Below are positions 3,092-50,770 of a stretch of DNA of 50,915 bases, piece by piece. Made by a program: the position numbers and the translations under genes. How positions within the stretch are numbered: position 1 is the stretch's first letter; the number at the start of each line of letters is the position of its first letter. Source of the stretch: Girardia tigrina (lineage: Eukaryota); the NCBI GenBank assembly GCA_001938485.1, contig MQRK01234283.1:1-50915 (forward strand), written 5' to 3'. Under the pieces are notes generated by a model, which was given only the letters and a program-made list of their open reading frames with translations, was not told the origin of the DNA and searched no databases.

Positions 3092-4357
3092 TGTACAACT
3101 AATTAATTTCGTATTTTTTGTTAAAAAAAACCATTTATTTAAGTATAAAAGTGAAAAAATATTTTATTCAAAATATTGTCCATCGGAAGCGGCAACTTTT
3201 TCCCATCTGTCAGGCAATTTATGGATTTCTCATCTTTTGCACCGAGAAAGTCATCAAGCCATTTTTTTAATATCTTCAACGAAAGGTTCTGCATCGACCG
3301 AATTCTGCATCGACCGAAACAAGTGGTAATCAGAAGGAATTTTCCATCTGGCATTTTCCAAATAATTTTTGACCGGTACTGCAACATGTGGCCGAGCATT
3401 GTCATGATGGAAAATCCATTTCTCGTGTCTGGTCGCCCATTCTGGCCGTTTTTCGGCTATTGCTTGCTTCAAACGTATCAATTGTTGCCTGTATAGCTCT
3501 CCCGTGATCGTCTGGCCCGATTTTAACAGCTCATAGNNNNNNNNNNNNNNNNNNNNNNNNNNNNNNNNNNNNNNNNNNNNNNNNNNNNNNNNNNNNNNNN
3601 NNNNNNNNNNNNNNNNNNNNNNNNNNNNNNNNNNNNNNNNNNNNNNNNNNNNNNNNNNNNNNNNNNNNNNNNNNNNNNNNNNNNNNNNNNNNNNNNNNNN
3701 NNNNNNNNNNNNNNNNNNNNNNNNNNNNNNNNNNNNNNNNNNNNNGTAAAAACGGTTTCTTTTTGTGGCGATTAAGCAGCATTTCAGACATGCAAAATCA
3801 TCTCTCAACGTCTCTCGGTTTCAATTCGTGTGGCACCCAATTTCCTTGTTTCTGAATGTATCCGGCTGCTTTTAAACGTTTAGAAATGGCTTGTTGAGTG
3901 ACTTCCAATGTTTTTCCAAGTTCTTCTTGAGTTTGACATGGATCTTGATCGAGTAATGCCTCCAATTCTTTGTCTTCAAACTTTTTTGATGGACCTGATC
4001 GCTCTTTGTCTTCTGTGTCAAAATCGCCATTTTTAAATCGTGCAAACCAATGCTGTCATACTCTAACCTCTGGAGCATATTCAGGATAAGCTTCTGAGAG
4101 TAAACGATGTGCTTCTGTTGCACTTTTCCTTAAATTAAAGAACAAAAGCAAACCTCCCCGCAAATGCTGTTTTGTTGGAACGTAATTTGACATTTTGACT
4201 GTAATAAAAAAAATTTGTGTGTTTACTAAAATTCAATAAAATTGACTATTGACTAGATAAATAGATATGATGTTAGTAACAAATTCAAAATGAGGTAACA
4301 AATACGAATATAATGTTATTTCGTAACAAATACGAAATTAATTAGTTGTACACCTAA
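3092..4357 (-). mobile_element. Mos1-like (mauritiana subfamily) mariner, disrupted, with an internal N-gap
   Basis: TIRs TGTACAACTAATTAATTTCGTATT (3092) and its reverse complement (~4329-4357). Transposase from ATG at 4193: MSNYVPTKQHLR..WFARFKNGDFD..WVPHEL..FHHDNARPH..PSDYHLFRSMQN. Confidence 0.92.
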
Positions 4358-9186: not shown

Positions 9187-11075
9187 ATGGAAACGGCAGT
9201 TTTGAAATTTAGAAGAAAAAGTTCAAGATGATTATGAAATTCCAGGGAATTTTGGATCCGGCCCCATATCTTCCATTTTTGTTCACGGATGTTCCGTTAT
9301 ATATATACATGGAATTGGATGAAAAGAAACAGAGCAACTGTGAAGAAGTACTGCAAATCTTGGACAATTCATTCGGATTAACCAGATGATCTGCGTACAA
9401 CAAACTGATTAATTTGAAATATTACGAAGGACAAACTATTGACGATTACGTTTCTCAAGTAAAGATGTTGGCATCAAAAATCGACGATCTGACCAAGGCG
9501 GCCTTTATGGCTGGATTGCCGTTCGAGTTGCAATTGAATTTAGAGCAGACCGGTGATCAAGATTTAACCGAAATGGTTGAATATAGTCGTCGGTATTTAG
9601 GAATTTAAAAATGCGTCACACAAAGTTCAATGTCAGCGGTACAAAACGTTGGTGATGGAAAGAACGTTTCTAAAGAACGAGGTGAGGTCAGCGGCGATAG
9701 AAGGAGTTCCTTTACAAAACCCCGTGTGCCACATGACGGAAATCTGGTACAAACAAGGGTAAACCACTATGACAATTCTCAGCGGCAATCTAATGGACAA
9801 ATAATTTGCTTTAAATGTAAGCAACTTGGACATATAGCAAAATATGCAAGTCTGGAAACGGACAGGGAAGTTTGTAGGCGCCGGCTCTTCCCTCTGACAT
9901 TTGAGGCGCAGCCAACCATGACTGTGATTGTTAACAACAAGTCGGTTACAGCGTTAATAGATTCGGGTTGCTCAAAAACTGTTGTTTTGAAAGGGTTGAT
10001 CAAGGGAAACTCGTTACAGTCAAATGAGCAAAGAATTGTTTTGGCTAATGGCGATGATATGTGTGGGGATAAGAGATGTAGAATTGACTATATACAATAG
10101 AACTATGAAAGTAGAATGTTCTGTCATGAAATACTTACCCTATGATTTGAGAATTTTAATTGGTATGGATGTTATAAGTAAACTTGGGGATGTGAAAATT
10201 AATTAGGGTGTTATCGAATTTGGTGTGTGTGTAGGAGAAGGACAAAAGAAGGCTGGTGACAATATGAGTTGTGTCACGGGTGTTGTGCCAAGAGTTAGCC
10301 TGAACAAACACAATTATGAGATTGAATTTAAGGATAATTGGACGGTTAAATGGAAGTGGAAGGATGAAGCGCCGATTTATCTACCAATTCGACTTTCGAC
10401 CTTTAAGGATGACAAATCGAAAGACATAGCTACAATGAAAATCCTTGAGGAGTGGATGAAGAAGGGTTATTTAATCGATTATGACGAGAAGGAAATGGGT
10501 AAATCGATAGAATCTATACCCATATTTGGAATATTGCAAGTTAACAAATCCAAGATAAGACCGATCTTTAATTTTAGGAAATTGAACAATTATCTAGACG
10601 TGTACAGTGGCTCAGCAGATATATGTTTGGAAAAACTTCGTACCTGGCGGCGAAAAGGATCAAGATTTTCCATGCTTGATTTATCAGATATATGTATATG
10701 CGTATATGCAGATTTGCGTTCACAAGGAAATGTGGCGTTATCAATCATGTATCATTAATGGAAAAAAGTACGCTCTAACCAGGATGGGCTTTGGTTTAAA
10801 TATCGCTCCGACCATTATGACTGAAATTGTCAAGTGGATTTTAAATTCTGATTCTAGAGCACGTGAAAACACCGATTCGTACATCGATGACATTTACGTT
10901 GACGAATCTACAATCACAGTTGACGAAATTAGAATGCTGTTCGAGAAATTTAGTCTTAAATGCAAAAAACCGGAAAATCTCTCAATGGATAAAGAGGTGC
11001 GAGTGTTGGGAGTAAAAGTCTTTAAAGATAAGAATTCGGTGAGATGGATGAGAGATGAAATGAAATATTTAACAT
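9187..11075 (+). mobile_element. Ty3/Gypsy-like LTR retrotransposon gag-protease-RT remnant, frameshifted and 3'-truncated
   Basis: Zinc knuckle CFKCKQLGHIAKY, aspartic protease ALIDSGC, RT motifs RPIFNFRKLN, RMGFGLNIAP and YIDDI. Confidence 0.92.
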
Positions 11076-11163
11076 GAAAAAATATAGATAATTATTTGTT
11101 TAAATAATGTCTATTTTAAAAGTATTTTAGTGAAAAATAAATTTTAATAGATTTGTGATTCGT
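11058..11163 (+). repeat. ~105-bp direct repeat, right copy, flanking the Gypsy remnant
   Basis: Near-identical to 9016-9120. Confidence 0.9.
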
Positions 11164-12010: not shown

Positions 12011-12486
12011 ATTAAAATAGGACGTAATAATGTCTTGTTGGTTCTTAAAAATAGAATATGTAGCAGCAGTTTTAAGATCATTTTGAATTTATTAGGTATG
12101 ATAAGTAACAAAACTACTGAATTATGTTTTAATCAGGGTAGCTACTTAATTTTATATTGTATTTTTAAAAATGAACAATTTCTTATAATTATTTTAATTC
12201 ACAGTAAACAAAATATTTGATGCTGGTTAATCCTTGATAATGACAGTTGATAATATATTAATATCAAAAATAAAGTTTACAAAATTATGACTTCCAATTT
12301 TAAGCACGAACCTACGTTAATCACGTGCAAACGTCAATCGTCGTTAACACAGCCTCCAGCCATACAGAACGTGTCAGCAGTTGAGAATTTCCAAGGATTG
12401 TCGACAATCGCTGATTCACAACGCCAGGAAAAAAATTTTGTCATGGTTCCAGAGACTCCGGTAAAGATAAAAAAATCTTATCCTCA

Positions 12487-12918
12487 ATGTTGAAGAAATC
12501 GTCCTCGACCCCCTTCAAGCAATCGATGGACTCGCAGACCGATCGGCGATCCGTCACTTTCAAGAAGCATGTCCAGATCGAGATCCTGAACAGCTTGTTC
12601 ACCAGCGGCACCGAAGACTCCATTGTCCCACAATCGACCGACGCCGCCACCGAGGACTACATCGTCCCACAATCGACTGAAGCCGGCAACGAGGAATCCA
12701 TTGTCCCACAATCGACTGTCGCCGCCACCAAGAACTCCATTATCCCACAATCGACCGATGCCGGCACCGAGGAAGAGCTGGATCAAGTCGCTGAGATTCT
12801 CCACCGCACCCAAATACGGATCGCCAAGCTCGAGATCTCCGAGGAGCTCGAAGCCTATAAATTATGGATCTCGAGGAGCTCGAGGCCTATAAAAAACGAA
12901 TCACCGAGCACCGCCTGA
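12487..12918 (+). CDS. GC-rich ORF of unknown function with 4 x 13-aa repeats (39-bp unit)
   Basis: ATG-initiated 143-aa ORF with repeat xxTEDSIVPQSTx; composition differs sharply from the flanks. Confidence 0.35.
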   Translation: MLKKSSSTPFKQSMDSQTDRRSVTFKKHVQIEILNSLFTSGTEDSIVPQSTDAATEDYIVPQSTEAGNEESIVPQSTVAATKNSIIPQSTDAGTEEELDQVAEILHRTQIRIAKLEISEELEAYKLWISRSSRPIKNESPSTA

Positions 12919-15967: not shown

Positions 15968-17950
15968 AGGTGGTACGCGAGCTACTGTTCAGTGTTACGC
16001 GGTCGGTGGGTAATTTTTTTTAAGTTTAGTTATTACACGGACGGCAACCTTCTTATAATGTCTTTTTGGAAATACTTTAGTATTGCCATTCGGGTATCAA
16101 ATTAAAGCTAATCTTATTTTAAGCTTTTTGGCATCAAGATTCCTATCTCAATTCATCATAGTTTCGTCAAAAAAACAATTTAAAACTAATTTATAAATTA
16201 ATTAAATTAAAGCATTTAATTAAATATTATGTAAAATGTGGTATTTAATTTATTTTAAAATTACTATGTGTAAAAATAATGTTCAATGTAATGTTTTTGA
16301 TATTTTAAATTTAAATTGTTTCAATTATTTTTTTAAAACATTTATCAACATTTTGATGAAGTTTTAGTTTTTATAAAATTAAATAACATTACATAAAAAC
16401 ATTTGTTTAAATACGTGTATATACGAATATATACGTATGGTTATATTCATAACTAATTTATTACCCCAATTAGAAAGTCTGATTTGTTATTTTACGAGAT
16501 TTTCAGAGATGTTCTTTTTGCTACTCGAGGAGTGTGGAAAAAATAACCAATTGCGGCCACATGTATTGTGTGACTTGTTTAAAGGATATATACCGCTGCT
16601 ACATGTGCCGTGAACTAATAGATACAAATAAGATTGTATCAATATTATATTAACAAAATTGGAATTATGAAATTTAAATAAAATCTAAATTGTTGTTCAA
16701 TTGTTGTTTGTTCAATTGTACGATCAATTGTTGTCGGTCTTTAAAATTCGAAATTGTGGTATCAAGTATTTTTTTTATTTTGAATCAATATCGAATCCTT
16801 GATGTTCGATCATTTATTGTTAGATTACAGAAATTTTTTAATCCTTCTAAGTCGTGAGAAAAATTTTCCGTTATTTTATTATTATTTAACGAAACAACTA
16901 ACAAAATCAATATTCAAATTTGAAGGCTTTATTTTCTTAATTGAAAATGGTACATAAAGGATATTATTTTTAATTTTAAAAAGAAAGGATATCTCTTTTT
17001 CCCAAGGAACGCCCTCGTGAGTCTCTCATCATTAACAACTCACCACTCAACTCAATATACCCAGCCAAGTAGAGGAATTCGAGACAACTTTTCAACCCAA
17101 GAACATAACACCTCTAATTCAAACATTTCAACTCCAAAAAATAAAAAGTCTGTTTGATTCCAACAAACAAAAAAAATTTTCTTTCCAAAAAATCCTACAA
17201 TTTTTTTAAAACAAAAGTAATGACAATGATGGATTTCAAAAACAAAATTTTCTCTTTCCAAAACAACAACCAATCAACTGAGACAAAAATTTTAAATGGC
17301 CAATTATAAAGACCTTGAATTACTTATCAAAATTTATTACGCTGTGGTATTAATTTTCATTTTTATTGTCAAACCTGATTTAGCAATAAGGCATTGTTTT
17401 ACTAAATTATTTATTTATTTTTTTTACTTTTTCTGTACCTTTTTTTCTGTTTCGAATTTTGCGTAAAATAATAAACTGTAATTTTTTCCTTGTAACACAA
17501 TATCCAAGCTCTTGTTTGTTTATTTTATGTGATCCCTGCTCGATCATTCTCTCTTCCATACATGTCCTTCTACGATATTCCTTGTTCATGACAAAGTATA
17601 TATAGTGTATATATAGAACGGATGCTTAAAGGCACAAAAATGCAATTATGAGTAAAATAACACTTGAACGCTTCATACGCTACCCAGAATTAGTACATTC
17701 ACATATTCCAATATTCATTCTTCTGTAAAACAAAGAATTTCAAAAAAGGTTGATTGTGCTGTTTATTATCTATAATAATTTATAAAATATAATGATAACT
17801 ATATTCTTATTATGTATTTTCTGCTCCAATTTGCATGAGCACAAATGTCATATTGTGATTTGATCTCCATGTGCAGCTCCGGGCACCAAAAAATCGATTT
17901 GTGAAAAGTTTTTCTAAAATGTTGACACTATTGTATCAAAAATTGGACTC

Positions 17951-17980
17951 GTCTAGAGGGCGCCATGGCGCCCTAGCGAC
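17951..17980. other. GC-rich terminal palindrome/hairpin
   Basis: GTCTAG-AGGGCGCCATGGCGCCCT-AGCGAC: perfect 18-bp palindromic core with imperfect outer arms, abutting the left ITR. Confidence 0.85.
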
Positions 17981-18223
17981 AGCAATCCCCTCAAACTCCC
18001 CACCTTTTGTTTTAAATCAACGCCAAGCAGTGTTTGGGATTATTGATTTTTCGCGAGAGTATATACGGGGAGTGGGGAGTTGGGGAGTGAACCTTTTTAC
18101 TTATATATAAGAAAAAAAATCAAGGAGTAATTAATATATTATGATAATATATTAACTCCCCAACTCCCCACTCCCCATATATAGTCTGCCATATCAATCG
18201 ATAATATTATATATTGATTTATT
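17981..18223 (+). repeat. Left inverted terminal repeat (243 bp)
   Basis: Reverse complement of 23784-24026; no mismatch found by eye. Confidence 0.95.
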
Positions 18224-18289
18224 AAATGTACTTTTATATTAATGATGACGTCATAGATAATATTAACACGTAACAATAACTAAAATTTA

Positions 18290-19624
18290 TTAAAGAGAAC
18301 AGGTTTTGTGTTCGAACTTAGACACAGCATAATAGGGATCATTAATGTATCTTTGATTGTCAGCAATGGTAGGAAATATTGTTGGCACATCAGTTACATT
18401 GTCTTTGGTGTTGACGAAATTGAATACCGGTACAGCGTACGGTTGTTTTGGAACTACCCATCTACTTGAATTCTGATCTCTTGATTTGGCCTCAGGGAAA
18501 TACGGAGCATTACCTTCTGGGTTTTTCCCGTAAAAATCAAAAGTATATTCGACCTCCCAGTTAAATTGAACTGTTAAATTCATTTTATTTCCTTGTGGTC
18601 CAACCATAGTGTTTAACTTGTAAAAAAACATGGGCATTGGATTGTGTTCTGACACATCGGGAGCTGTAGCTACGGATTTGTAGTATTCATAGTCTGCCTT
18701 TGCCTGAGTGTCAATTACACTGTCTATAATGCGACTAGATTGACCAGTAACCGAATCAATTGCAATCGTATTTATCTTCACTACACCTTCAGCCCAATTA
18801 TGAAACTGCATGCCACCCGGTAATCGTACATATCTCTTAAATTTCGTTAAAGTTCGTCTACCTAGTGCCAAAGAGAATCCATCTCTAAAAGGCGAATACT
18901 TTTTACAACCGAAATAATCGAATCTAGTATAGAATGGTGATTTTTTCTCATTAGCTATTAATGGTTCACATTGACTATCAAATTCTACTATGTGTCTCGG
19001 ATATTTACTTTTGCATTGATACTCATACACAACATCTTCACCAGCATTACAATTAGTAATTCTAACCAGTGACGATGTTTCGAATGGATGTATCCAACCT
19101 TTGCGTGTTAAAGTAACAGTGCCAGGATAGAATAATGCACTGTTTACATCATAACCGTTGTGTAATGATCTTTCATTACAAAATATATCAGTGAATGCCC
19201 TAGTTTTATTGGGTGCTTCAGCACACGGTCCAAATAAATGCATGTTGTCTATGTATGTTAAAAACTCTACTTGTGCCTGTAGACCTGTGAATTGAGTCGG
19301 TCCACCTTCACCTGTGGCTTGTATATTGAATATACGATATTTCATACTTTTCGGTTTAAACCAATTATATGTTGATATGACCATAGTTGACATGGGTTTT
19401 CCACCAGCAATGCAGTACGGCCACCAATATTCCAGAGGTTCGTTATACCATTCATTGGTTTCCGTGGATTTGATGCATTTCGCACCACAACATGTAAACG
19501 TCATCGTGGTCGAGTCAGCCGGAGACGGAAATTGATCATGTCCTTGACTGGCCTCTAGTGCATTAGATCCACCGCCCGCAGATGCTGCGCCTGGAGTCGG
19601 TTGAGGAGGAGCTGGAGTAGCCAT
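18290..19624 (-). CDS. Parvovirus-like major capsid protein (VP2-like jelly roll), 444 aa
   Basis: Gly/Ala-rich N-terminus; NWFKPKSMKYRIFNIQ resembles AAV NWGFRPKRLNFKLFNIQ; TYID resembles VFTD; HNPMPMFFYKL resembles HPPPQILIKN; LTVQFNWEV resembles VSVEIEWEL. AATAAA overlaps the stop. Confidence 0.85.
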   Translation of the reverse strand: MATPAPPQPTPGAASAGGGSNALEASQGHDQFPSPADSTTMTFTCCGAKCIKSTETNEWYNEPLEYWWPYCIAGGKPMSTMVISTYNWFKPKSMKYRIFNIQATGEGGPTQFTGLQAQVEFLTYIDNMHLFGPCAEAPNKTRAFTDIFCNERSLHNGYDVNSALFYPGTVTLTRKGWIHPFETSSLVRITNCNAGEDVVYEYQCKSKYPRHIVEFDSQCEPLIANEKKSPFYTRFDYFGCKKYSPFRDGFSLALGRRTLTKFKRYVRLPGGMQFHNWAEGVVKINTIAIDSVTGQSSRIIDSVIDTQAKADYEYYKSVATAPDVSEHNPMPMFFYKLNTMVGPQGNKMNLTVQFNWEVEYTFDFYGKNPEGNAPYFPEAKSRDQNSSRWVVPKQPYAVPVFNFVNTKDNVTDVPTIFPTIADNQRYINDPYYAVSKFEHKTCSL

Positions 19625-21378
19625 ATTGAAATCAATAAATTTAAAAATAATAAATCAATACTAAATAAATCATTCCAGTCTGCATTGTAGTCCAAATTTA
19701 AAAGTACATCATGATTTATTTTGAATTGATGGTCGTAATGTTCATGTCTAGCTTGTTCATTTTCACTGAACCACACAAATGCACCATAATCCTCATCGTA
19801 AATATTTAATTTTTTTTCCTCGTTCTTTCTCCACTGCATATATTGTTTATGATGTAGTTTATTTTTATTTACAAATATTCCACCCAATAACTCATACAAT
19901 TCCTCTTTTTCATATATATCTAATTTTCTTTTTTGAGATTCCTTTAAGTAATGATAAACACCATTTTTTACTTGTACAGCCAATAATCTCATTTGCTTAG
20001 CAGTATATCTTTTCTTAACAATAGGAGTATTTCGTTTGCTGCGCTGTAATACTTTGTTCTCCTCAGTTTCATCCTCTCTATCATCTATATGAATATGATC
20101 TTTAGGTTGAGGTGGAATTTCTAATAATGGATGTCTCGGTACATAAGCACTAGCTTGCCAATCATAAATAAATTCAGGATTATACTTGTGTTTTAATGTT
20201 AACATTTTAGAAAAAACATGTGTATCGTCATATACTATATTTGATACTCGTGTTTGTTCCTCAGGTGTCAATTTATCATAATCCCATAGCTCTCCAATTA
20301 ATTTTTCATATTCATCAGACTTTTGTTGACGTCTTTTAAAGTATGGTTCATTACATTTATAGTTGTAACAACGAGCTTTTTCAATTAAAGTAGTGATTGA
20401 ATTTCCTATTGCCTCATGATCTATATGATTACCACTCCATTTATTACCCTTAACTTTAAATTTTATTTTATTGCCAATATATGGCGGTAATCTTCTAATG
20501 AAATTACCAAATCTTTTAGAATTAAGATATTGTTTAAAATAGGCCATCCTGTGCGTTCGGAACTTTTGTTTGTTATAATAATTGAATTGATTACCGACAC
20601 CACTAATATCAAATTTTCTATTACTACTCGGTATTATCATCATATTACTTCTTTGATTATAATTAAATGCATGAATTTTTTTGAAATTTGCATAATTATT
20701 CATTCTGGTTTTCAAAGCAGTTCGCATAAATAATTGTTGAGTATTTTTTATATTTATTTTATACGGTACACTTTTAGAATTTAAAGAAAATTGTGAAGAT
20801 GACATATTCTTCTGTATTTTATATAATGCAAATGGTTTTGGCAATACTTTATCAATTAATTTATGTATATATAAATTTTCTTGAGTAAGATCTGGCATCG
20901 AGGCTGTACCGACATTTTTTTCTGTGAAATATGTATAAGCCATATATAGATAGTTTTGAATATATTTTTTAATATCTTGATCTTTTCTCATAGATTTATA
21001 TTCACTATTTTCATCAATGAACGACTTAATATGAAAAACTAACTCAATTATTTTCTTTTCAGTGATTTCCAACTTTGTTAAACTTTTATTAGGTATATTT
21101 CGTAATTCTTGTAACAATTCCTGATCAGCAGTCATTCGAATTTTTTTATTAGTAGATTCATAGGCAATGTCATGCTTCCGACAGGCCTCATCTATAGCAT
21201 TCAACGGTTCATAACCCGGATTTGGTTGCTTAGTTGCTTTATTTAATCGAACTTTTGTACATGTACCAGGACCACAATAATTATATCCATACATATGCAT
21301 CTCTCCAGGCATCAATTTTTTAAAGTTAGCCTTTCTCTGTGACGTTGAATTCTTCAATTTAAACTCGTTTAATTTCAT
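19555..21378 (-). CDS. Viral phospholipase A2-domain protein (VP1-unique-like minor capsid protein), 607 aa
   Basis: Calcium loop YNYCGPGT and catalytic DEACRKHDIAY near the N-terminus, followed by a long basic region of unknown nature; ORF is intact. Confidence 0.85.
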   Translation of the reverse strand: MKLNEFKLKNSTSQRKANFKKLMPGEMHMYGYNYCGPGTCTKVRLNKATKQPNPGYEPLNAIDEACRKHDIAYESTNKKIRMTADQELLQELRNIPNKSLTKLEITEKKIIELVFHIKSFIDENSEYKSMRKDQDIKKYIQNYLYMAYTYFTEKNVGTASMPDLTQENLYIHKLIDKVLPKPFALYKIQKNMSSSQFSLNSKSVPYKINIKNTQQLFMRTALKTRMNNYANFKKIHAFNYNQRSNMMIIPSSNRKFDISGVGNQFNYYNKQKFRTHRMAYFKQYLNSKRFGNFIRRLPPYIGNKIKFKVKGNKWSGNHIDHEAIGNSITTLIEKARCYNYKCNEPYFKRRQQKSDEYEKLIGELWDYDKLTPEEQTRVSNIVYDDTHVFSKMLTLKHKYNPEFIYDWQASAYVPRHPLLEIPPQPKDHIHIDDREDETEENKVLQRSKRNTPIVKKRYTAKQMRLLAVQVKNGVYHYLKESQKRKLDIYEKEELYELLGGIFVNKNKLHHKQYMQWRKNEEKKLNIYDEDYGAFVWFSENEQARHEHYDHQFKINHDVLLNLDYNADWNDLFSIDLLFLNLLISIWLLQLLLNRLQAQHLRAVDLMH

Positions 21379-21531
21379 TTTCTGAAAAAATCAAAATAAT
21401 ATCCTGCAACGTAATATATTTAATATTACATTAATAATTTTATAAACCTCCTCGTAATATAAAATATTGATCCATTATTTATATATATATATAACGAAAT
21501 CAATTATATTTTTTTCAATATATTATTTAAA
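21379..21531. promoter_or_regulatory. Divergent intergenic region (putative bidirectional promoter; contains TAATATTAC at 21421-21429)
   Basis: 153-bp AT-rich spacer between the head-to-head PLA2 and Rep ATGs, with TATA-like tracts. Confidence 0.5.
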
Positions 21532-22978
21532 ATGGTTGATAATATGAAAGACATGATGCCTACGATTTCAAACAATTCAATTATGCCTACGAATTCGAAC
21601 AATTCAATTATGCCTACGAATGCAATCAATTCAATCAGTGAATCGAGATTAGCCGAAGCCCGTAGACGTTACAGAAATTTCCGGTTTTCCATACCCATAT
21701 CCGACTTCGAAAATCGCAGAGAATCACTGATGAAATTATGGGAAAAGAATACCGTCTTTATAATAGGCCAAGAAGAGCTTTCTCATAATAATCATCACCA
21801 TTTGGAGATGTTCGCAACGATGACAAATAGTAAATTTTTGACCTGGTAATTCATTTAATCACCGGTTTAATAATTTATAGGCATGACATACGGGAGCGCC
21901 AGGAAGCAGCTGGACGTACCATTCGTCTCCGGCGTCGTCGACACAGAGGTTCAGGCGGCCATAGATTACTGCAGTAGAAAATGGCATCAAAATCTTTCTT
22001 GGAAATCGCAGATCTGTGTTTTATGAAAGTCTCTGGCCACATGTGATAAAATGTGAGTCGGCCAGAGACGCGTTAAATGTAGTGAAAGATAACAAGCCTG
22101 AGCTTTATTTCTTAAAACGGAAGGCTCTCAGTGAGTCTTTCGATGCTGAATTTGGTAAAAGTACGAAAGCTATTTATAAAAATTTTAATGTCCCACATGA
22201 AGATGTGTGGGACAACTTGACACATGTATTCATAGGCCCCACAGGCATAGGAAAGAGTAATTTCGCGTTGTCGCATTTTAGTAAACCCGTCCATGTAACA
22301 AATTTACAAAACTTTTCTAGGATTTCCGATAACCCGGAAATCACGGACGGAATAGTGATTGACGACGTCGAACTGTCTAAACTGTCTGCCCACAAATTGT
22401 TGCAAATTGTGGACAAACAGTTTGAGCACGGTGTCGACGTCAAATACGGGTATGGGTACATACCCGCTAACTTGCCGAGAATAGTCATACTAAATTCACT
22501 AGAATATTTTTGGCCCGAAAAGATTTCCTCAACTTTACGTTCGGCCATTAATAGAAGAATTAAAATACATTATTATAATGCCCGATTATACGACATCAAT
22601 CATGACAATAATAATGTAGATAACAGTGTAGTGAAATCTGTTTATAAACCTAGTTCAGAAATTAAATTGGCTCCTAAGAAAGTGACTCCATTAAGTAATA
22701 AACCGACTGTATCGACTAATACTGATACTGGTGATTGTGCCACATGGATGTCTAAAAAGCGATTAAAAAATGTCGATTTGACTAACGAGAATGATACAAA
22801 AGAAATAGATGTCCCCAAGACGTGCAGAAACCTTGGCATGAAGAACCCTCTGCCTGAGCAGTATGAGGGATTCTTAAAGTGGTTGGCACGCAAGAAAAAC
22901 AAGGAACTCATTGAATACATTGAAGTAGACAAATTATACAAAACGGATATTGATGACAGTGATTATGAGGACTTGTAA
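21532..22978 (+). CDS. rep: CRESS-DNA (circovirus-like) Rep: HUH endonuclease plus SF3 helicase; predicted intron 21830-21880 and one frameshift near 21976
   Basis: Motif I RNFRFSI, IIGQEE, motif II HHHLEMF, motif III AAIDYCS; Walker A GPTGIGKS, Walker B IVIDDV, B' VDVKYG, motif C IVILN, Arg finger AINRR. AATAAA at 23025. Confidence 0.88.
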
Positions 22979-23093
22979 TGTTTTTATTAGTTTTTATTTG
23001 ATCATGTTTTTTTTTGAAGAGTTGAATAAAGTTTTGTTATTGTTAATTGTCTTGTTTAATTTACACAATAGATAATAACTTGAACTAAAATCT

Positions 23094-23756
23094 TTATTTA
23101 AATACACGTCTAAGTAAATTCATCTTAACTTTATAAAATAAATGAGTATAATCATATATATTAACCCCTACATTAATAACAACTGATTTGACACAATGAA
23201 TATACACAGAACGATTCAATAGCGGTAATCTAATTTCGGAAGTGTACTTCCAGATAGGTTGATTATTTGTCAAAAAGATAGGAATTCTATCCATTTTAAC
23301 TTTTTGTTTATGCTTCTGACTAATTTTTACACAGGGAGACGACTCACAAATCAATTTCATATAATCAGCATTACGTACATCTAAAATAATCTCCTCACCG
23401 ATGGCACAATTTTTGCCCACCAAGTCCTCAAAACAAAACTCAGAATTCAGGTGCATGGTTGTAAAGAACCCGCAGTTAAGTCCGGCAGTCCAAATTTGGA
23501 TAAAGAGAGTCTTTCCCGCATTTGAAACTCCGTCAATAATGACTGTTGTTGTTTTTCCTGCCCGTAATAGTAGGATCGTACCCAACGCAAGAATACGATA
23601 ATTGACTCTATCAGTTTCTTCGTTAATCGTAACATTATTAAGACTGTTATGTTGCCCAAGTAATATCCGGTGATCATTATTGATAGTAAACTCGTTAGAA
23701 TCCAAAAAATCGACAACAAACTTTTCAAGAACATCCTCTACCAGACTCTCTAGCAT
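23094..23756 (-). CDS. Stand-alone SF3 helicase, parvovirus NS1 C-terminal-like, 220 aa
   Basis: Walker A GVSNAGKT, Walker B AIGEE (parvoviral EE type), B' KHK, motif C IFLTNN, LLNR. No HUH domain. ATG lies next to the right ITR; AATAAA overlaps the stop. Confidence 0.85.
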   Translation of the reverse strand: MLESLVEDVLEKFVVDFLDSNEFTINNDHRILLGQHNSLNNVTINEETDRVNYRILALGTILLLRAGKTTTVIIDGVSNAGKTLFIQIWTAGLNCGFFTTMHLNSEFCFEDLVGKNCAIGEEIILDVRNADYMKLICESSPCVKISQKHKQKVKMDRIPIFLTNNQPIWKYTSEIRLPLLNRSVYIHCVKSVVINVGVNIYDYTHLFYKVKMNLLRRVFK

Positions 23757-23783
23757 TAAATATTAAAAGTACAAATATAGATC

Positions 23784-24026
23784 AATAAATCAATATATAA
23801 TATTATCGATTGATATGGCAGACTATATATGGGGAGTGGGGAGTTGGGGAGTTAATATATTATCATAATATATTAATTACTCCTTGATTTTTTTTCTTAT
23901 ATATAAGTAAAAAGGTTCACTCCCCAACTCCCCACTCCCCGTATATACTCTCGCGAAAAATCAATAATCCCAAACACTGCTTGGCGTTGATTTAAAACAA
24001 AAGGTGGGGAGTTTGAGGGGATTGCT
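23784..24026 (-). repeat. Right inverted terminal repeat (243 bp)
   Basis: Reverse complement of 17981-18223. Confidence 0.95.
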
Positions 24027-25299
24027 AGAGTCATAATTGACATATGGGTCTATCCATGTGTACTACCATAATTTTGATATTGATCTTCATTCGACCTTTA
24101 AACCCTATGTACAGAAAACAGCACAATGTATATAATAGGTTGATTGTGGTATTTATTATAATTATTTAAAATAATTATTATTTATTATTATATTATTATT
24201 ATTATTATTTAATAATATTATAATTATTTTCCGCATTAATTTACAAAATTGATTTAAACAAACAAAATTCACAAATTCGAAAATCAGTCATATCAACTAT
24301 TTCGAATCTCGCTCACATTTAAATCAAATTTCGTTTTTTAATGTTATATTTTATTTAATTATTATTTTACTATTTTTCTTTATCAAAATTTATCGCAAAA
24401 AAATACGAATTTACGTTTGAACAATAAGAATTTTCTTCAAATCATAAAAACGATTGGCCACAAAATTTGAATGGTCATTGATCATCCAATCAGAACCAAC
24501 CGAGAGAGGGAAAAAATGAAATGATTTGAAAATCAAATTTTAATTAATTTAAAAAATTGTACTAAAATTTTTTTCTGGACTCCTGATTTAAAATTTTTCT
24601 AGATGTTTTAAAAGATGTTTTAAAAGATGTTCTAAAAAAAGATATTCTAAAAGATGATTTGAAACTTTTTTGGGTTATGAGATTTTACTGAATTATTTTT
24701 TAAAAAATTTATGCAATTCGATTTAAAATTTATCATCGAACTTTTGATTTTTTGCTGCTGGCTACAATTATTTAATTTTGAAATATATTTTGGTTGCCTC
24801 TCAGATTTGAAAAAATACGGATGAAAAAATTACTGAATTTAAAATTGTAAAACCTTTGAATCTGAAAGATTTTAATTGCTGAATTTGAAATGTTATAATC
24901 GTTGAATCTGAACGATATAATTACTGAATCTGAATAAAAAATATTTGAACTGAACGGTAAAGAAATTAAATATTTTTATATTTTTTAATGACAAACGAAA
25001 TCTAAATTATTTTATTGTTATTTCTTAGAGCTTTTTTTATATAAATATTGTATAATTGAAGTTTGTAACTGCGATATTGAGGATTCAATTTATCAATAAA
25101 ATGAGTACTTTTTTCTTAAAAAAATATTTTACTAAAATTTTTTTGAATCAAAAAAATATAAAAATATCGAATAAAACGAAACAATGGGCCCGGCACTGAG
25201 ACCGTACTCCTTGATTCATTTTCCTTGCACCCCTCTGCTACCACCGACTGATTTTCAGAGCAACCTGGGGTTTCCGTCGAAACATCAAGATTAAATATA

Positions 25300-25530
25300 A
25301 GTCAGAAAATTACTGTCTTAAAATGGCCTCCATATAATCCAGATCTCTCTCCAATAGAGAAGTTATGGGTTTTTTGTCAAAAGAAAAGTTCACATTGGGT
25401 ATATAAATACCAAAAAGAACTCATATACATGATCCGGACATTAGGGCTGCTTGTCGTGGTCTCATCGAAGGTAAGCCTCGACGAATTCAAGCTTGTATTG
25501 ATGCAAAAGGAAGATCCATTAAATATTAAT
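25300..25530 (+). pseudogene. Tc1-like transposase C-terminal remnant
   Basis: LKWPPYNPDLSPIEKLW and RRIQACIDAK. Confidence 0.75.
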
Positions 25531-28312
25531 AGTCGTTGGTGATGCGAGAGCGGGCGCAGCATGGTGACCACGGCGTGTTAGAGAATGATCTGCAGGACGC
25601 GGGGGCTCAAATTCAACGTATTCTTACTGCCATCATCCTCGCTTCCTGACTCGATAATCTCGATCGCCAGAACTCTGCGGCTCGCCGTCCCAGCCCCGTC
25701 TTGAATATCTCCAGGCCACAATCTACATGAAGCACTATCAATGTCAGCCAATACAATTTCTCTCCAATTTTTTTCTGAAATTTAAAAAATCGCGATAGTC
25801 ACTTCCGACATTACTCGAACATCTCTGTTATAATCCGTTGCTTCGGCGCGATCTTCAGTTCAACCGCAATTAACTGCTCATATAACCATCGCGGATCGTG
25901 ATGGGCATCATCTTTGAAAAACCTTTCTTGTTTAACCGGACAAAATTTATAACCCTCCGGAACACTGATATTTCTCTTTAGAAAAGATCCCATAGCGATC
26001 CTTCTCCTGACCCACTCAATCGGAATCATATAACATCTTTTAGCAATAAAAAATTCGAAAATATGAGTCGCCGTTTTTGTACTAATCGCCGCTTTCCCTT
26101 TCATCGAGTGGCTCTTCATACCGTCACCGGCGGTTATTGTCTTTGGACACAGCTAAACACAAACCGTCAGAATCCGGTATTTCATAAACGATCTTTGTTT
26201 TTCTTTCTATTATCGCCTTGCCGACATTCATATTTTCAACGATCTCCATTTCTAATCAATTTAACCTTGAATTAAAGAAAAAAAATCTTATTTTTATCAA
26301 GCGTTTTTACAAAAAAATGGCGACTTTCAAAACTCAAACTACAATGTAAAATTTTTTCTTTGTGGCGAATAATTTTCAAAGATCGATTTAAACAAATCGA
26401 ATTAAATCATATCGAAAATTAATAATAATGTCTCGATAATTGCTATTAATAACTGGCCAATCAGAAAGGCTAAATAAAAAATCCTTAAGAGTACAAAATC
26501 CGATCCACCTCATCGGCCATTTTGGCAACTTTGATTATTTTTTTTATTTAATTTTTTCCCGATTTTGGCTATCATGCCATTTTTTTATTATATTTTTCTT
26601 TAGTTCTTTTATTTATTTTTTTCTTTTCAAATGACGCCAATTTCCCTATTCTCACAATGACAAAAAACACAAATCTCCCAATATTGGGTCAAAAAAAAGA
26701 AAATAAATAAAGTATCGATTGACTTTCTTCATAGATACAGTTTAATCGGGTCGATAGAATTCGTTTAATTTAATTCACCTCTCCATCGAATATCAATTTG
26801 ATTTTGTATTCTTTCGAATTCAATTTATTTTGTCGCAAATAAATAAAAATAAAATCAACACCAAATTGATCAACTTTATTCTATCGATTATTTCCGCTCG
26901 ATCGGTTGAAATTTTTGATTGTATCCTCGATAACTTGCTACAAGTGTCTCAATAGATCGGGAGAAAAGATGGGGAATTTGAAATTGAAGCTGCTTAAATG
27001 TGTTGGGCGACAGATTCAATATTTTCAGGATACGCCGAATTACATTCGCCAAATGGATCAACCAGAAATATTGAAATCGTAACGAAGGTTTGGCTCCTGG
27101 CAAGCAAGTGTCTCCGACCCCCTTTCTCACTCAGAATCAAACAGCCGTTATTCGATCTGTCTTTTTTTAATAAAATTTAATTAAGGTTTTCATTGTCTTG
27201 GTTTATTAAACAATAATGTAATTATAATTTAATATATTTTAACAGAAATGATAAAATTTTATTGATGTTACGTAATGACGGATGAAATTGAGCGACCAAT
27301 TTTTTGAAAATCTAACAAATATTTCAATTTTTATCTTTTATGAGATATTTTATTGATAAATTTACTCAATTTTTAAGTTAGTGACATGTAAAATTTCAAT
27401 AATGGTTGGTTTGCTAAATTTTGTACAAATTTAAATATCATGAAAAAAATGTGCAGACGACACTGTATGAACGATATTTGAACGAATGAAATTTGATCGA
27501 CCCTGTATGTAATTATTTACTTTAAATTATGGATCCTTGGTTTCATTTTAAATGGAATGTTTGTTTCCCAATATGTATTTTACATATAAAATATAAAAAG
27601 TCAAAACTCTGTTTCGACCCCATTTTTAAAAATTTTATTTTATGAATATATTTATTTTAGACGGTTTCGACCCCATTTTTTAAAATGTAATTTAATGAAT
27701 ATTTATATTTTAGACGGTTTCTATGCCATCTAAAATAAAAAAGATGATTCAATTAAATTTAAAAATTTTTAAAAATGGTTTTATACTTAATTTTATTATT
27801 TTTGTTTAAGTGAAGACTTTTCGGTAGCATTATTAATTAATTTAATTTATCTAGTAGGCAAAATTTCATTTCAAGAATGGACTAGATTTTATTCAAACGA
27901 GAGAAAAGAATTTACGTATATGAAAGGTATTTTTACTCGTTCGCAGTATGTTGCCGACTACAGTCAAATTTCTTGGCATTGCAATTAAATAGTCTCCAGC
28001 AAGCACTGTATGGGTAGAATTCGAACAAATGTAGAAAATGGTGAGCTTTTAACTACTGTAACAATCCATATCCCCGGAAAGAAGTGACTATTTTATAGAT
28101 TATCTGCGATATTCTATAGCGATTTTCCATCTAGACGTAATTATAATGAAATGGAACCGGTCAAAGAGTTGCCTGACAAGAAGTGACTATTTTATTGGTT
28201 TCTTTTATGACTATTTAGTGACTATTTTACGAAATCTGAACCCAAAAAGAGGTTTGTTTTGTTTCAAAATTGAAAAGTAAAAAAGTAAAATAATTAAAAA
28301 TGTATTCATATG

Positions 28313-29489: not shown

Positions 29490-31275
29490 ACTCGACTATT
29501 TGTTGCAGAATGTGCTATAAATTTAAGAGCAAAAATTTCATCCGAAAGCAATAGAGGAAATATTGTGTTTATTCCAAGAATTGACCTTGCACCATCTGAC
29601 ACAATGTTGCCCTTTATTTTGAAAAGACAATTTCCAATAATTCCTGCCTTTGCAATCACAATCAACAAATCTCAAGGAAAATCCTTCGATTATGTTAGAA
29701 TCGATCTATAAACGCAATTTTTACACATGGTCAGCTTAATGTTGCATTTTCTAGATGAAAAATTTCAATCATTATCAAAGTTCACATTAGATCTGGACGA
29801 CTACTAAATGACGGTCGTATAACGGATGCGCAGGCAAAATCTTGACAAATTTTAAACCACCATTGTGAAAAGACGAAATAAAATTTTCAGAAGTTGTTTA
29901 TATTTTATTGAAGGGCAAGATGTAAAGAACAAAAAATGTTTACAGAATAATTGAAAGTAGTCCGTCTCTATACACAGCACGAAGGCGTTTCTTAATCCCT
30001 TTGAAGTCCTTCCGCAACGTGGACTGATCCATTGTTTTCAACATTTTCTTAATCGTTGCTGTAGTTGAGGGATTGTTTCAGCCTCTCAACCTCTTCATAC
30101 ACTTTCGCCTTTAGAGCGCCCCAAAATTTCTCAATGGGGCGGCAGTGTGGGACGTTGGGAGGATTACACTCCTTGTCAACAAAGTGGATGTTGAGATAAT
30201 GGAGAAGTTTGAGAGTGCTGTGGGCAAAATGTGCAGAAGCCAGGTCCGGCCACAAGAGAATTTCGTCATCTCGATGATATTTCTTGATAAACTTCATTAG
30301 ACCTTGTCTGATGCACTGCTCTTGATAGAAATCGGCATGTACACTGTTTGGTCGCTGCAAAAATATAGGATCACTGATGTGGTCTGCGGAGACACAAAGC
30401 CAAACCATCAGCTGAACAGGGAACTTTCTTTCTGTTCTATATTTGACGTGTTCAGGAGCAGATTGAGGACTCGAAGTAAAGTAGTGATCATTTCCAGTCG
30501 ATTCCAATCACATTTCAACTTGAAGTATCTCTCATCATCCATGATGATTTTTTTATCACTCAAACTTCGGAGTAATTTCCCTGCTCTCAGTTTCACTCGC
30601 TTTACTTTCTCCTCTGTGTACTGAAGAGCCTTCTTTCTCTTTTGGCATTTTAGACCGCTTTCCTTGATAATATTCCTCATCGTCGTGGCACAGACACCAT
30701 ACTTGATGGCTTCACGCCTGAGAGATACACCACGCTTTGTTTAAATCCATCTCCAAATACTTGCGCGCTGTTGATTTGTTAACTTTTTATTGTGGCCTCC
30801 ACTTCCTGGCTTCCTGTACACATTTGAACTCTTTGAGAGGTTTGACAGAAGCGTATAAATGGTAGACCGTGCACAAGCTTGATTCACAAAGTGGTTTACA
30901 GTGAAGGCTTTTCCTTTTAAAAAGTTCAGCTGCCAAAAGTTGCGAACTCTCTCACGGAGCTGTTGCTCCGTCATGTCTTTTCTGTGAAAATGAATGCCGA
31001 GAGGATGACGAAATATTATGCAAGAAACCCCCTACACAATGTGATTCATGCTGCAATTTGATTGGATGTTCCATTTATTTTTAATTTACTGATAGTATGC
31101 ATTTTTCATATATCCAGATTTTGCCTGCGCACCCGTTATTTACTAAAAATATAGTATACAAAGAAATACTGTAAAATTTTAATTCGAATTTGAATTTTAA
31201 ACCCAACTGTTAGTATCAATCACATATTTTTATCATGTAATAATGTAATGTATAACATGACGTGTCATTTACTAG
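29490..31275 (+). mobile_element. Helitron 3' part (Pif1-like helicase C-terminus and CTAG end), interrupted by a DD37E element
   Basis: VFIPRIDLAPSD..RQFPIIPAFAITINKSQGKSF..HGQLNVAFSR before the insertion; TKNIVYKEIL* resumes at ~31142; ATGACGTGTCAT hairpin then CTAG|T at 31272-31275. Confidence 0.85.
29822..31136 (-). mobile_element. Full-length ITmD37E (DD37E) Tc1/mariner-superfamily transposon with a disrupted transposase
   Basis: TIRs ACGG(A/G)TGCGCAGGCAAAATCT with TA on both sides. IMDDERY, WPDLASAH...RPIE with 37 residues between D and E (counted). Confidence 0.92.
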
Positions 31276-45485: not shown

Positions 45486-46060
45486 CGAGGGGTGTCCCAA
45501 AAGTTCACGGACTGAGAGAATATGGCGTGGTCACGTGTGTGTGTGACTGTAACGCGCGGTGTGTGTACGATGAAATGATGAGGGAACCAACCAATTGTAA
45601 TTGAGGTGAACTCTCATTGGCTTTTGTAGTTTTTGATCTCTCTCTCTCTCTTGTAGTTAGTATGGAAGAGGCAGTGAAATCTCAACGAGCAATCATCTAT
45701 TTTCTCTGGAAGGAAGACACCTCCACTGTAGATATTGTGCACCGTTTACACCGCGTCTTTGCTGATGCCGCTATGGAAAGGACGGCTGTCTTTAAGTGGG
45801 TGCAACGATTCCAGGCAGGGCGACAATCATTGGAGAATGATGAACGCAGTGGTCGACCAATAACGGCTGGATGTCAAGAAAATGTGAAAGTTATCGAGGA
45901 AGTTATTCTTAGTGAATGATGTGAAAGTGCGTGAAACTGAATGGTGATTATATTGAAAAGTTCGATCGCGATTCTGATGAGGATTGATCAATTTTGTTAA
46001 TTGGAATAAAGTTTTTGAATTTGTTTCTTATCAGTCCGCGAACTTTTGGGACACCCCTCG
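45486..46060 (+). mobile_element. Internally deleted mariner (575 bp)
   Basis: 30-bp TIRs CGAGGGGTGTCCCAAAAGTTC(A/G)CGGACTGA with TA TSD. N-terminal HTH (..KWVQRFQAGRQSLENDERSGRP) is joined to the C-terminal KCVKLNGDYIEK. Confidence 0.92.
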
Positions 46061-47935: not shown

Positions 47936-49292
47936 CAGGGTGCGGCAGCTATTTGAGAACAAAATGACATAAAGTTCAAAAAATGAATATACAACAGAAA
48001 AATAACATTTATTACAATTTAAAATTTTACATATATTAACTAGTACATAAAGGACTACATCATTCAATGAAACCGCCATTAGCGGCAATAACGGCCTCTA
48101 CACGTCGTCGAAACCGACTGCAGGCAGTAATTAGATGGGTCTTTGGAATGTTTGCCATTGNNNNNNNNNNNNNNNNNNNNNNNNNNNNNNNNNNNNNNNN
48201 NNNNNNNNNNNNNNNNNNNNNNNNNNNNNNNNNNNNNNNNNNNNNNNNNNNNNNNNNNNNNNNNNNNNNNNNNNNNNNNNNNNNNNNNNNNNNNNNNNNN
48301 NNNNNNNNNNNNNNNNNNNNNNNNNNNNNNNNNNNNNNNNNNNNNNNNNNNNNNNNNNNNNNNNNNNNNNNNNNNNNNNNNNNNNNNNNNNNNNNNNNNN
48401 NNNNNNNNNNNNNNNNNNNNNNNNNNNNNNNNNNNNNNNNNNNNNNNNNNNNNNNNNNNNNNNNNNNNNNNNNNNNNNNNNNNNNNNNNNNNNNNNNNNN
48501 NNNNNNNNNNNNNNNNNNNNNNNNNNNNNNNNNNNNNNNNNNNNNNNNNNNNNNNNNNNNNNNNNNNNNNNNNNNNNNNNNNNNNNNNNNNNNNNNNNNN
48601 NNNNNNNNNNNNNNNNNNNNNNNNNNNNNNNNNNNNNNNNNNNNNNNNNNNNNNNNNNNNNNNNNNNNNNNNNNNNNNNNNNNNNNNNNNNNNNNNNNNN
48701 NNNNNNNNNNNNNNNNNNNNNNNNNNNNNNNNNNNNNNNNNNNNNNNNNNNNNNNNNNNNNNNNNNNNNNNNNNNNNNNNNNNNNNNNNNNNNNNNNNNN
48801 NNNNNNNNNNNNNNNNNNNNNNNNNNNNNNNNNNNNNNNNNNNNNNNNNNNATATGATGTGTAACGAAGGTCCTCATGAACCACCCGCCGGATAGTAGCT
48901 TCGTCAACCTGCAGTTCCCTGCCCAGTGACCTCATAGACTTCCCAGGGTTCTCATCGATGACAGATTGGATTCGGCTTACAAATTCTGCATTTCTGATAC
49001 TGTCCGAACGTCTACAAACTTGTTTCCGTTGCGAAGCTTTAGCCCCATCACCCTTTCGCAGCTTCTAATTCTGTACGAACTTTAAAAACAAACGACCGGG
49101 CGACTTTCAAAAATGTAGGAATTTCTGAATCGGTGTGTCCTGCAGCTAATGACACAATAACTGCATGCCTTTTCATTTCACTCGTAAGAGTAGCTTCTGC
49201 CATGTCTACCAGCAAAAATAAAATTATGTAATTATAACACACAAAAGATATGGTGTCTATGTTACGTGTTCTCAAATAGCTGCCGCACCCTG
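47936..49292 (-). mobile_element. maT/DD37D-like Tc1-mariner element with an internal N-gap
   Basis: TIRs CAGGGTGCGGCAGCTATTTGAGAAC with TA TSD; SMRSLGRELQVDEATIRRVVHEDL and ACSRFRRRVEAVIAANGGFIE. The catalytic core is hidden in Ns, so the subfamily is inferred. Confidence 0.85.
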
Positions 49293-49368: not shown

Positions 49369-49826
49369 TACATGACGGAAATCTGGTACAAACAAGGGTT
49401 AACCGCTATGAAAATTCTCAGCGGTAATCTAATGGACAAATAATTTGCTATAAATGTAAGCAAGTTGGACATATAGCAAAATATTGCAAGTCGGGAAACG
49501 GACAGGGAAGTTTGTAGGCGCCGGCTCTCTCCCTCTGACATTTCCGGCGCTGCCAACCATGACTGTCATTGTTAACAACAAGTCGGTTACAGCGTTGATA
49601 GATTCGGGTTGCTCAAAAACTGTTGTTTTGAAAGGTTTGATCAAGGGAAACTCGTTTCAGTCAAATGAGCAAAGAATTGTTTTGGCTAATGGCGATGATA
49701 TATGTGTGGGGATTAGTGATGTGGAATTGACTATATACAATAGAACTATGAAAGTAGAATGTTCTGTCATGAAATACTTACCCTATGATTTGGGAATTTT
49801 AATTGGTATGGATGTTATAAGTGAAC
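49369..49826 (+). mobile_element. Second partial copy of the Gypsy gag-protease region
   Basis: Near-identical to ~9731-10185 (ALIDSGCSKTVVLKG). Confidence 0.9.
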
Positions 49827-50770
49827 TTACTTACACCTTGTCGGACGTAGAGAGCCTTGGAGAGACAAACGAGGACCCTTCAGCGTACTTACCGAGGATT
49901 GCCCGCATCACCTCTGCAAGGTTCTTCGTCACTGATTTTAGAATTTGCATATATTTACGACTCAATCTTGTTATTATATGGATTATTATATTTACTACGA
50001 TTACTACCATTACGTTTATATTGCTAATATATTAATTATTATTATTATTATTCTTATATAAGGAGCACATTCGCGATTTTGTGTATATGTGGATGACCGC
50101 GTAGATTGCTATTGTAATTAGGTACTATTATACTTTATCAACGCCTCAACCATGACCTCCGAATTATTTCCGAATCGAACTCCGAATTATTTAAATCATG
50201 AAATTTTATCTAAACAAAATTTACTCAATGATTTCACCGATTTAAATATTTACTCTATTTCGATCATTTTAGTGATTATTCACTAATGGCCGTATTGCAA
50301 ATTTTTCTGATCAAAAGGGTGTTTTTGATTACTTTAAAGATTTTCCATTTTTCATTATGTACCTTATGAATATAAATAAAAATAATTATTTTGGATATAT
50401 TTACTTATATTGGAAAATCTGGGCTATGTTGAGATTCTCTAAATAGAAAAGTAATAAAATATATAAAATTAGTTTTCCGCTCTCCTAAATAAAAATAAAT
50501 TTAAAAAGTAATAAATAAATAAATCAAATAAATAAATTAATAATCAGGACGCGTAATCCCATTTTAACCTTCCCTTTGTTTGAGCACATTGCTCAGGGAC
50601 GCGAGGCGGTTAGTTGGAATAATAACAATGAAAGCAAACAAATAAATAGGTATATAAATTTTAGTAAATAATTATTATTTATTATTATTATTAATTTAAT
50701 CTATATTACTAATTTTATCTCTATTTATTTTTTTAGTATATTATTATTATTATTACTATTATTATATTTA

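Follow-up and report, generated by a model that had tools for sequence, protein, structure and literature searches.

A probable integrated single-stranded DNA virus with a parvovirus-type phospholipase, and two predicted helicase genes, one of them a probably CRESS-type Rep, between hairpin-bearing inverted repeats

What kind of element lies between two perfect inverted repeats in a 50,915-nt stretch of Girardia tigrina DNA (GenBank assembly GCA_001938485.1, contig MQRK01234283.1; its whole length is called the window hereafter), where genes of parvovirus type accompany a gene resembling the replication protein (Rep) of circoviruses, was the question raised by this locus. The answer that we favour as probable is the nearly complete genome, recently integrated, of a virus whose DNA is linear and single-stranded (ssDNA), belonging to a very sparsely sampled lineage and inserted in a transposon-rich, AT-rich region of its host. 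A sequence-only reading had previously described 243-bp terminal inverted repeats enclosing four genes, with the capsid, phospholipase A2 (PLA2) and helicase genes on the minus strand and the Rep gene on the plus strand. Both the repeats and the four open reading frames (ORFs) were recovered on those strands; the element start given in that reading, 17951, had to be moved, as it falls 30 nt outside the left repeat.

A single pair of long inverted repeats was present in the window, at 17981-18223 on the left and 23784-24026 on the right, each of 243 nt and 100% complementary to the other. They are separated by 5560 nt, giving a whole unit of 6046 nt. An imperfect palindrome is found in both of them, its 36-nt arms matching at 92% (18056-18187 in the left repeat and 23820-23951 in the right one), and folding the repeat as single-stranded DNA gave a long stem bearing a pair of small side hairpins in a three-way, Y-shaped structure. 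The fold energy was -47.3 kcal/mol, compared with -18.8 +/- 3.7 for shuffled sequences (z = -7.7), and none of the 200 shuffles equalled it. The heptamer GGGGAGT is iterated in these structures, with three units in each stem arm and one more copy toward the outer end of the repeat; all 14 copies found in the window fall within the two repeats (14/14), where about one copy in the whole window was expected. When free, the genome of such an element would be single-stranded and linear. Searches with blastn and tblastx detected neither another copy nor a fragment of the element within the window, and no Rfam family was found there. A further palindrome, centred on TGACGTCA, was observed at 18233-18266, between the left repeat and the 3' end of the capsid gene, and has no counterpart at the right end.

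The four long ORFs between the repeats correspond to a capsid candidate (18290-19624, minus strand), a PLA2 protein (19555-21378, minus strand), Rep (21532-22978, plus strand, in pieces) and a helicase-only protein (23094-23756, minus strand). Given that one stop per 14 codons was expected at the composition of the element, the chance of open runs of 220-607 codons lies between 1e-7 and 5e-20; in the 45 kb of flank the open frames reach 191 codons at most, and the largest ORF of the element besides the four genes is at most 124 amino acids (aa). The PLA2/capsid unit and the Rep gene diverge from a central region, whereas the helicase gene runs inward, starting beside the right repeat, so that Rep and helicase genes are convergent, with their stops 115 nt apart. 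The sequence-only reading had also noted AATAAA signals at three of the 3' ends, and the hexamer does overlap the stop codons of three genes (capsid, Rep and helicase) or lie within about 50 nt past them, a support that is only mild because the hexamer is common in this AT-rich DNA. Past the capsid and Rep stops a 29-nt stretch containing AATAAA was also shared in matching orientation at 83% identity (18266-18294 and 23022-23050), which may be due to chance, matches of this size being frequent in AT-rich DNA here.

The central intergenic region (21379-21531) is 153 nt long, has 15% G+C and carries TATA-like boxes on both strands, together with the sequence TAATATTAC at 21421-21429, in the stem of a small palindrome. 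This sequence matches seven of the nine positions (7/9) of the origin nonanucleotide printed in PMC4419787 for one circular Rep-encoding ssDNA (CRESS)-type virus. Three copies were counted in the window against 1.9 expected, and therefore the chance of one landing in the 153-nt central region is about 0.6%; that region folded no better than shuffled sequences (z = -0.44), and no significant stem-loop was found in it. As a candidate origin motif, TAATATTAC is thus a lead only.

In the 607-aa PLA2 protein, encoded by an intact ORF, residues 26-118 matched the Pfam family PF08398, the phospholipase A2 of parvovirus VP1, with an E-value of 4.4e-12 over profile positions 2-80 of 80, and both the GxG glycine loop and the His-Asp pair were present, in agreement with the sequence-only reading. 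The remaining 490 residues, rich in Lys and Asn, had no match in Pfam, PHROGs, NCBIfam or the solved structures. The ORF overlaps that of the capsid candidate by 70 nt in a different frame. The latter is also intact and encodes 444 aa with a glycine-rich N-terminus. It had no match in Pfam, PHROGs or NCBIfam, no direct match in the PDB, and none in a word-based search of 5.8 billion proteins, whereas a full HMMER search of 1.84 billion cluster representatives yielded three relatives only (P0003, P0004 and P0005; E 8e-16 to 2e-6), the first of them a fragment of the 447-aa P0007. Those relatives that are full-length, with 428-447 aa, are each encoded by a free-standing ORF starting near the same point. 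When the profile of this family was compared with the PDB, the top four matches were all bocaparvovirus VP2/VP3 chains (E 0.05-0.1), spanning one conserved stretch near the N-terminal strands. A parvovirus-like capsid, as proposed in the sequence-only reading, was accepted as the likely identity of the 444-aa protein because the PLA2 gene adjoins it.

The 220-aa protein encoded by the intact ORF at 23094-23756 resembles the helicases of parvovirus NS1 and adeno-associated virus (AAV) Rep40. It matched Parvo_NS1 in Pfam with 23.3 bits (cut-off 20), and its best solved matches were parvovirus NS1 (E 0.009) and AAV Rep40/Rep68, the alignment covering residues 65-168, which begin at the P-loop lysine and reach an asparagine-containing motif where the helicase core ends. 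The second, NS1-like helicase of the sequence-only reading is in this way supported. Its ATG is located 28 nt from the right repeat, and a nuclease domain is absent from the protein, since just two codons are open upstream of that ATG. No relatives of it were found by the word-based search. A 95-aa ORF (23447-23734, minus strand) overlaps the start of this gene in another frame and may be due to chance.

The Rep gene (21532-22978, plus strand) combines a putative HUH-type N-terminal part, recognised at the level of motifs, with a superfamily 3 (SF3) helicase, and its frame is in pieces, which were searched separately and not joined. A P-loop helicase is encoded by the long downstream piece. 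Only three relatives were found, P0001 (366 aa, 75% identical) and P0002 and P0006 (227 and 390 aa), the latter two with 42-49% identity in two comparisons. For both P0001 and the Rep piece of the element the best solved matches were circovirus Rep chains (8xms and 7lar), weak at E 0.08-0.8, in an alignment that extends from the P-loop through the helicase core. The Rep of the element, P0001 and P0006 each matched the geminivirus Rep central domain weakly (E 0.015-0.05, short of the cut-off). The family profile retrieved nothing useful from the solved structures. A YxxK-type motif is invariant in these same three proteins and is located about 95 residues ahead of the P-loop in a relative, a short spacing more in keeping with CRESS-type Reps than with NS1. 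In the upstream piece there are strings fitting HUH motifs I and II at a suitable spacing. On these sequence comparisons Rep is probably CRESS-type: of the circovirus-type Rep claimed by the sequence-only reading, the P-loop helicase nearest to circovirus Rep was retained, although its matches are weak and the gene is broken in this copy. Three tandem 27-nt units (21556-21635, plus strand; 90% matches, score 132) lie at the 5' end of the gene, within its first 100 nt.

Two discontinuities interrupt the Rep frame. The first is a short stretch in which four stops lie in frame, with canonical GT and AG dinucleotides around it; the ORFs of both relatives begin at the methionine that comes next in the window. 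Because of this shared start methionine and the GT/AG dinucleotides, the stretch was read as a short intron, a reading that is as yet unconfirmed; introns occur in many CRESS-type Rep genes (10.1101/687855). The second is a single frameshift, at a place where both relatives read straight through. Rep is the sole broken gene of the element, by this one frameshift, be it real or an assembly error, and the other three ORFs are uninterrupted.

The element is predicted to encode two unrelated SF3 helicases, one fused to a HUH-like part and the other a bare NS1/Rep40-type protein, and no similarity between them was detectable (BLASTP E 0.96). This combination could have arisen if an unrelated Rep, from a CRESS-type virus or from a Rep-encoding transposon, had been inserted once into an ordinary parvovirus-like or bidnavirus-like provirus, without being part of the virus. 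Such an origin would agree with Rep being the only broken gene, and with Rep and capsid relatives having been seen on separate short contigs only. However, the Rep segment is not bracketed by repeats or duplications, and the genes are tightly packed, Rep sharing the 153-nt divergent region with the PLA2 gene and having its 3' end within 115 nt of that of the helicase. An element without Rep would furthermore have no nuclease and no PolB, and hence no initiator at all, and a published group pairs a CressRep with NS1 (PMC11071296). A one-off insertion was therefore judged unlikely, and it is the rival explanation that survives best.

Still less probable was a reading of Rep as a highly diverged parvovirus NS1, with the 220-aa gene as a duplicated second helicase, which would turn the element into an odd densovirus. 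In its favour, every signal for the class of Rep is weak, and parvoviruses too are marked by a PLA2, by repeats with hairpins and by a helicase of NS1 type. In contrast, the two helicases show no similarity to each other, Parvo_NS1 was matched by the 220-aa protein only and not by Rep, whose top solved matches were circovirus Rep, and the distance of about 95 residues from YxxK to P-loop in the relative is better suited to CRESS Reps than to NS1.

The junctions of the element with the flanking DNA bear on how it arrived. The hexamer CTAGAG was read directly at the left junction (17953-17958) and again at the right junction (24025-24030), whereas the other bases adjoining the repeats differ between the two sides; it represents microhomology, and there is no clear target-site duplication. 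The left end alone carries 24 additional nucleotides (17957-17980), made up of a perfect, G+C-rich 18-nt palindrome (17957-17974) and a 6-nt spacer, in contrast to the left flank, with 27% G+C. These may be viral terminal sequence that was lost on the right, in which case the true viral terminus may reach beyond the 243 nt. The unequal ends, together with the junction microhomology, fit end-joining of a linear molecule with uneven loss at its ends. Since there are no differences between the repeats and three ORFs are intact, the insertion would be young, although gene conversion between the repeats could also preserve their identity. A direct repeat of about 75 nt with 78% identity was also observed in both flanks (17744-17818 and 24134-24206), at 163 nt to the left and 108 nt to the right of the element; it was ruled out as a target duplication, being too distant from the element ends, and is probably a host repeat split by the insertion.

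A virus-derived mobile element that moves within the genome by means of its terminal repeats and a HUH Rep was also considered. The element does have terminal inverted repeats and a putative HUH protein, its surroundings are transposon-rich, and eukaryotic transposons encoding Rep exist (Replitrons, PMC10288648). Nevertheless, one copy was found in 51 kb, a clear target duplication is missing, and a transposon would have no need of long, intact ORFs for capsid and PLA2, making this explanation quite improbable. An assembly artefact, in which a free virus genome from the sample was joined into repeat-rich host sequence, was the least credible of the alternatives, for while perfect repeats and nearly all ORFs intact are what a live virus would show and the flanks consist of repeats, the asymmetric ends with microhomology at both junctions and the frameshift in Rep fit a real integration.

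Several observations weigh against the favoured reading of a virus genome with a parvovirus-like particle and a CRESS-type Rep. The hairpin lies 72 nt in from the outer end of each repeat, and in this the classic parvovirus telomeres differ. The HUH N-terminal piece of Rep had no match in the PDB or Pfam (the PDB gave His-tag artefacts only), and no relatives were found from which the conservation of this piece could be judged. Rep and capsid were assigned to their classes by matches with E-values of 0.05-0.1, and the four bocaparvovirus matches count as a single weak match because the chains are close kin. The AlphaFold2 model of the capsid, built from a four-sequence alignment, was unusable (predicted local distance difference test score, pLDDT, 26.8), as was that of the Rep relative (pLDDT 30.7), and consequently no fold comparison was possible; the parvovirus-type capsid and the circovirus-type Rep accordingly stand at the level of weak sequence matches. 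Finally, the roles that are assigned below to the two helicases are drawn by analogy only.

One premise of the sequence-only reading, according to which CRESS viruses have circular genomes free of terminal inverted repeats, is outdated: the order Lineavirales and its family Oomyviridae, ratified by the international virus taxonomy committee (ICTV) in 2025, comprise linear ssDNA viruses within Cressdnaviricota (PMC12451638; PMC13426907; PMC13499601), and Oomyviridae are the very 'parvo-like hybrid viruses' (PHV/NIH-CQV) that had been cited there, with a circovirus-like Rep, a PLA2-bearing capsid and presumed stramenopile hosts (PMC12451638; PMC13426907; PMC13499601). The element would share with them a genome of linear ssDNA, a Rep that distantly resembles that of circoviruses and, if the capsid candidate is a jelly roll, a capsid of this fold associated with PLA2. 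It differs in its size of about 6 kb, compared with contigs of 3.5-3.6 kb whose membership in Oomyviridae is unconfirmed, in its extra NS1-type helicase gene, in having PLA2 on a separate 607-aa ORF, and in its position among animal-like transposons, as opposed to the stramenopile hosts of oomyviruses. Since the full HMMER search with the capsid candidate retrieved no oomyvirus-like capsid among the 1.84 billion representatives, any relation to Oomyviridae would be remote.

A parallel in gene content is 'Parvo3071', a parvovirus-like group in which an auxiliary CressRep accompanies NS1 and which was reported, in a one-sentence description, in a 2024 preprint by Buck et al. (PMC11071296). In that group, a CRESS-type Rep, a parvovirus-class NS1 and a parvovirus-like capsid occur in one genome, as they seemingly do in the element; the contigs, of about 3.5-3.6 kb, come from mouse and bat samples, and the likeness is one of description only. 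The distinct lineage proposed by the sequence-only reading holds in so far as the element fits no described family fully, whereas the pairing of CressRep with NS1 had already been reported (PMC11071296).

The bidnavirus-like layout with a CRESS Rep that had been suggested was likewise upheld in part. Bidnaviridae have a parvovirus-derived capsid and helicase, and a PolB in place of the nuclease (PMC4061559; PMC13426907). Terminal inverted repeats, a likely parvovirus-derived capsid and an SF3 helicase without endonuclease, that is, a helicase-only NS1, are shared with them. In contrast, the element has neither a PolB gene nor room for one and carries a HUH-type Rep instead, the CRESS class of which is weakly supported, and the bidnavirus genome is bipartite, a single integrated molecule being all that is visible here. 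An identity as a bidnavirus was rejected, as the Pfam search gave no polymerase match and no further ORF exceeds 124 aa.

With ambisense densoviruses and the 'megaparvovirus' lineage, the latter known for four cassettes that include a separate PLA2 protein, for complete copies in beetle genomes and for an NS1 of 561-611 aa (PMC13426907), the element shares homotelomeric repeats with hairpins, coding on either strand, a PLA2 encoded outside the capsid ORF, a set of four large ORFs and an endogenous state in which almost the whole genome is kept. Their NS1, however, joins nuclease and helicase, whereas that of the element is a helicase-only protein of 220 aa beside a second replicase, and transcription in the element diverges from the centre for two units. 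A classic ambisense densovirus was rejected for the same two reasons, there being no full NS1 and two units diverging from the centre, and the whitefly ambidensovirus was discarded as a parallel because its published layout is ordinary. Among the features by which Parvoviridae are recognised, a hairpin-ended genome of 4-6 kb was found (6046 nt), and so was the PLA2 of the VP1 unique region, on a separate ORF; the single NS1 combining HUH and SF3 was not. The element shares features with Parvoviridae, Bidnaviridae and Oomyviridae, and fits none of them.

The helicase-only protein invites comparison with AAV, in which Rep40/52 are small Rep proteins that load ssDNA into preformed capsids. Rep40 was among its best solved matches, and the protein is, like Rep40/Rep52, helicase-only and of the same fold class; those of AAV, however, are produced from an internal promoter of one rep gene, whereas that of the element is encoded by a separate gene beside an unrelated Rep. 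By this analogy, the helicase-only protein might act as the motor that loads ssDNA into preformed capsids, and Rep as the initiator, which would bind the iterated motifs, nick and unwind, while the hairpinned ends would prime rolling-hairpin synthesis by a host polymerase. The central 153-nt region would drive PLA2/capsid and Rep divergently, with the helicase transcribed inward from the right repeat, and splicing of the two capsid-strand ORFs could yield a minor capsid form with PLA2, for escape from the endosome. Integration would have proceeded by end-joining of the linear molecule; microhomology is present, a clear target duplication is not, and one end retains 24 nt more than the other. 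Because of the frameshift, the present copy would be unable to make a full-length Rep from one frame, unless the frameshift is an assembly error.

More tentatively, and with clearly less confidence than in an integrated virus genome as such, the element could represent an animal-infecting lineage located between Lineavirales, Parvoviridae and Bidnaviridae. Its linear genome with hairpin ends would carry a particle and packaging module of parvovirus type, made up of capsid, PLA2 and helicase-only NS1, and would be copied by a HUH Rep of CRESS type, while the two helicases would divide initiation and packaging between them. Such a lineage would possibly preserve an intermediate state in which the NS1 nuclease was lost and an acquired Rep took its place. 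The sequence-only reading had suggested a link between CRESS viruses and parvoviruses; the element may be such a link, and is in itself no demonstration of it. As a gene mix it is an unusual variant and not categorically new, similar kinds having been described since 2024-2025. The lineage is extremely rare, with three capsid relatives among the 1.84 billion representative proteins and three Rep relatives.

Mixes of CRESS and parvovirus genes are known almost solely from short metagenomic contigs, the hosts of which are often doubtful and for which reagent contamination has often been suspected (PMC13141889). A chromosomal copy with both ends kept provides the host context, complete repeats with their hairpins and iterated motifs, and the full gene set. 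If relatives share its gene order, two different replication helicases would have been kept together in one small ssDNA genome, a situation that would bear on the exchange of replication modules among parvoviruses, bidnaviruses and linear CRESS-type viruses.

The flanks of the element have 27-29% G+C and hold remnants of long terminal repeat (LTR) retroelements, of a Tc1/mariner-type DDE domain and of a Mos1-type helix-turn-helix, a repeat landscape that is animal-like and points to a eukaryotic chromosome, probably of an invertebrate. A segment at 12415-12918 stands out by its 52-56% G+C and is open in several frames, with a proline-rich repeat and no match in the Pfam search; exact look-ups of two flank ORFs, this segment included, returned no entry. 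Runs of N occupy 3537-3745 and 48161-48851 of the window. The LTR retroelement remnants, with zinc knuckle, aspartyl protease and reverse transcriptase, were located on the plus strand at 9609-11077 and 49460-50035. Tc1/mariner-type transposase remnants were recognised at 25252-25539 and 45605-45916 on the plus strand and at 3801-4055 and 30052-31031 on the minus strand, two of them by profile and two by eye, the profile matches being DDE_3 (E 5e-6) and the Mos1 family HTH_48 (E 2e-6, above its cut-off).

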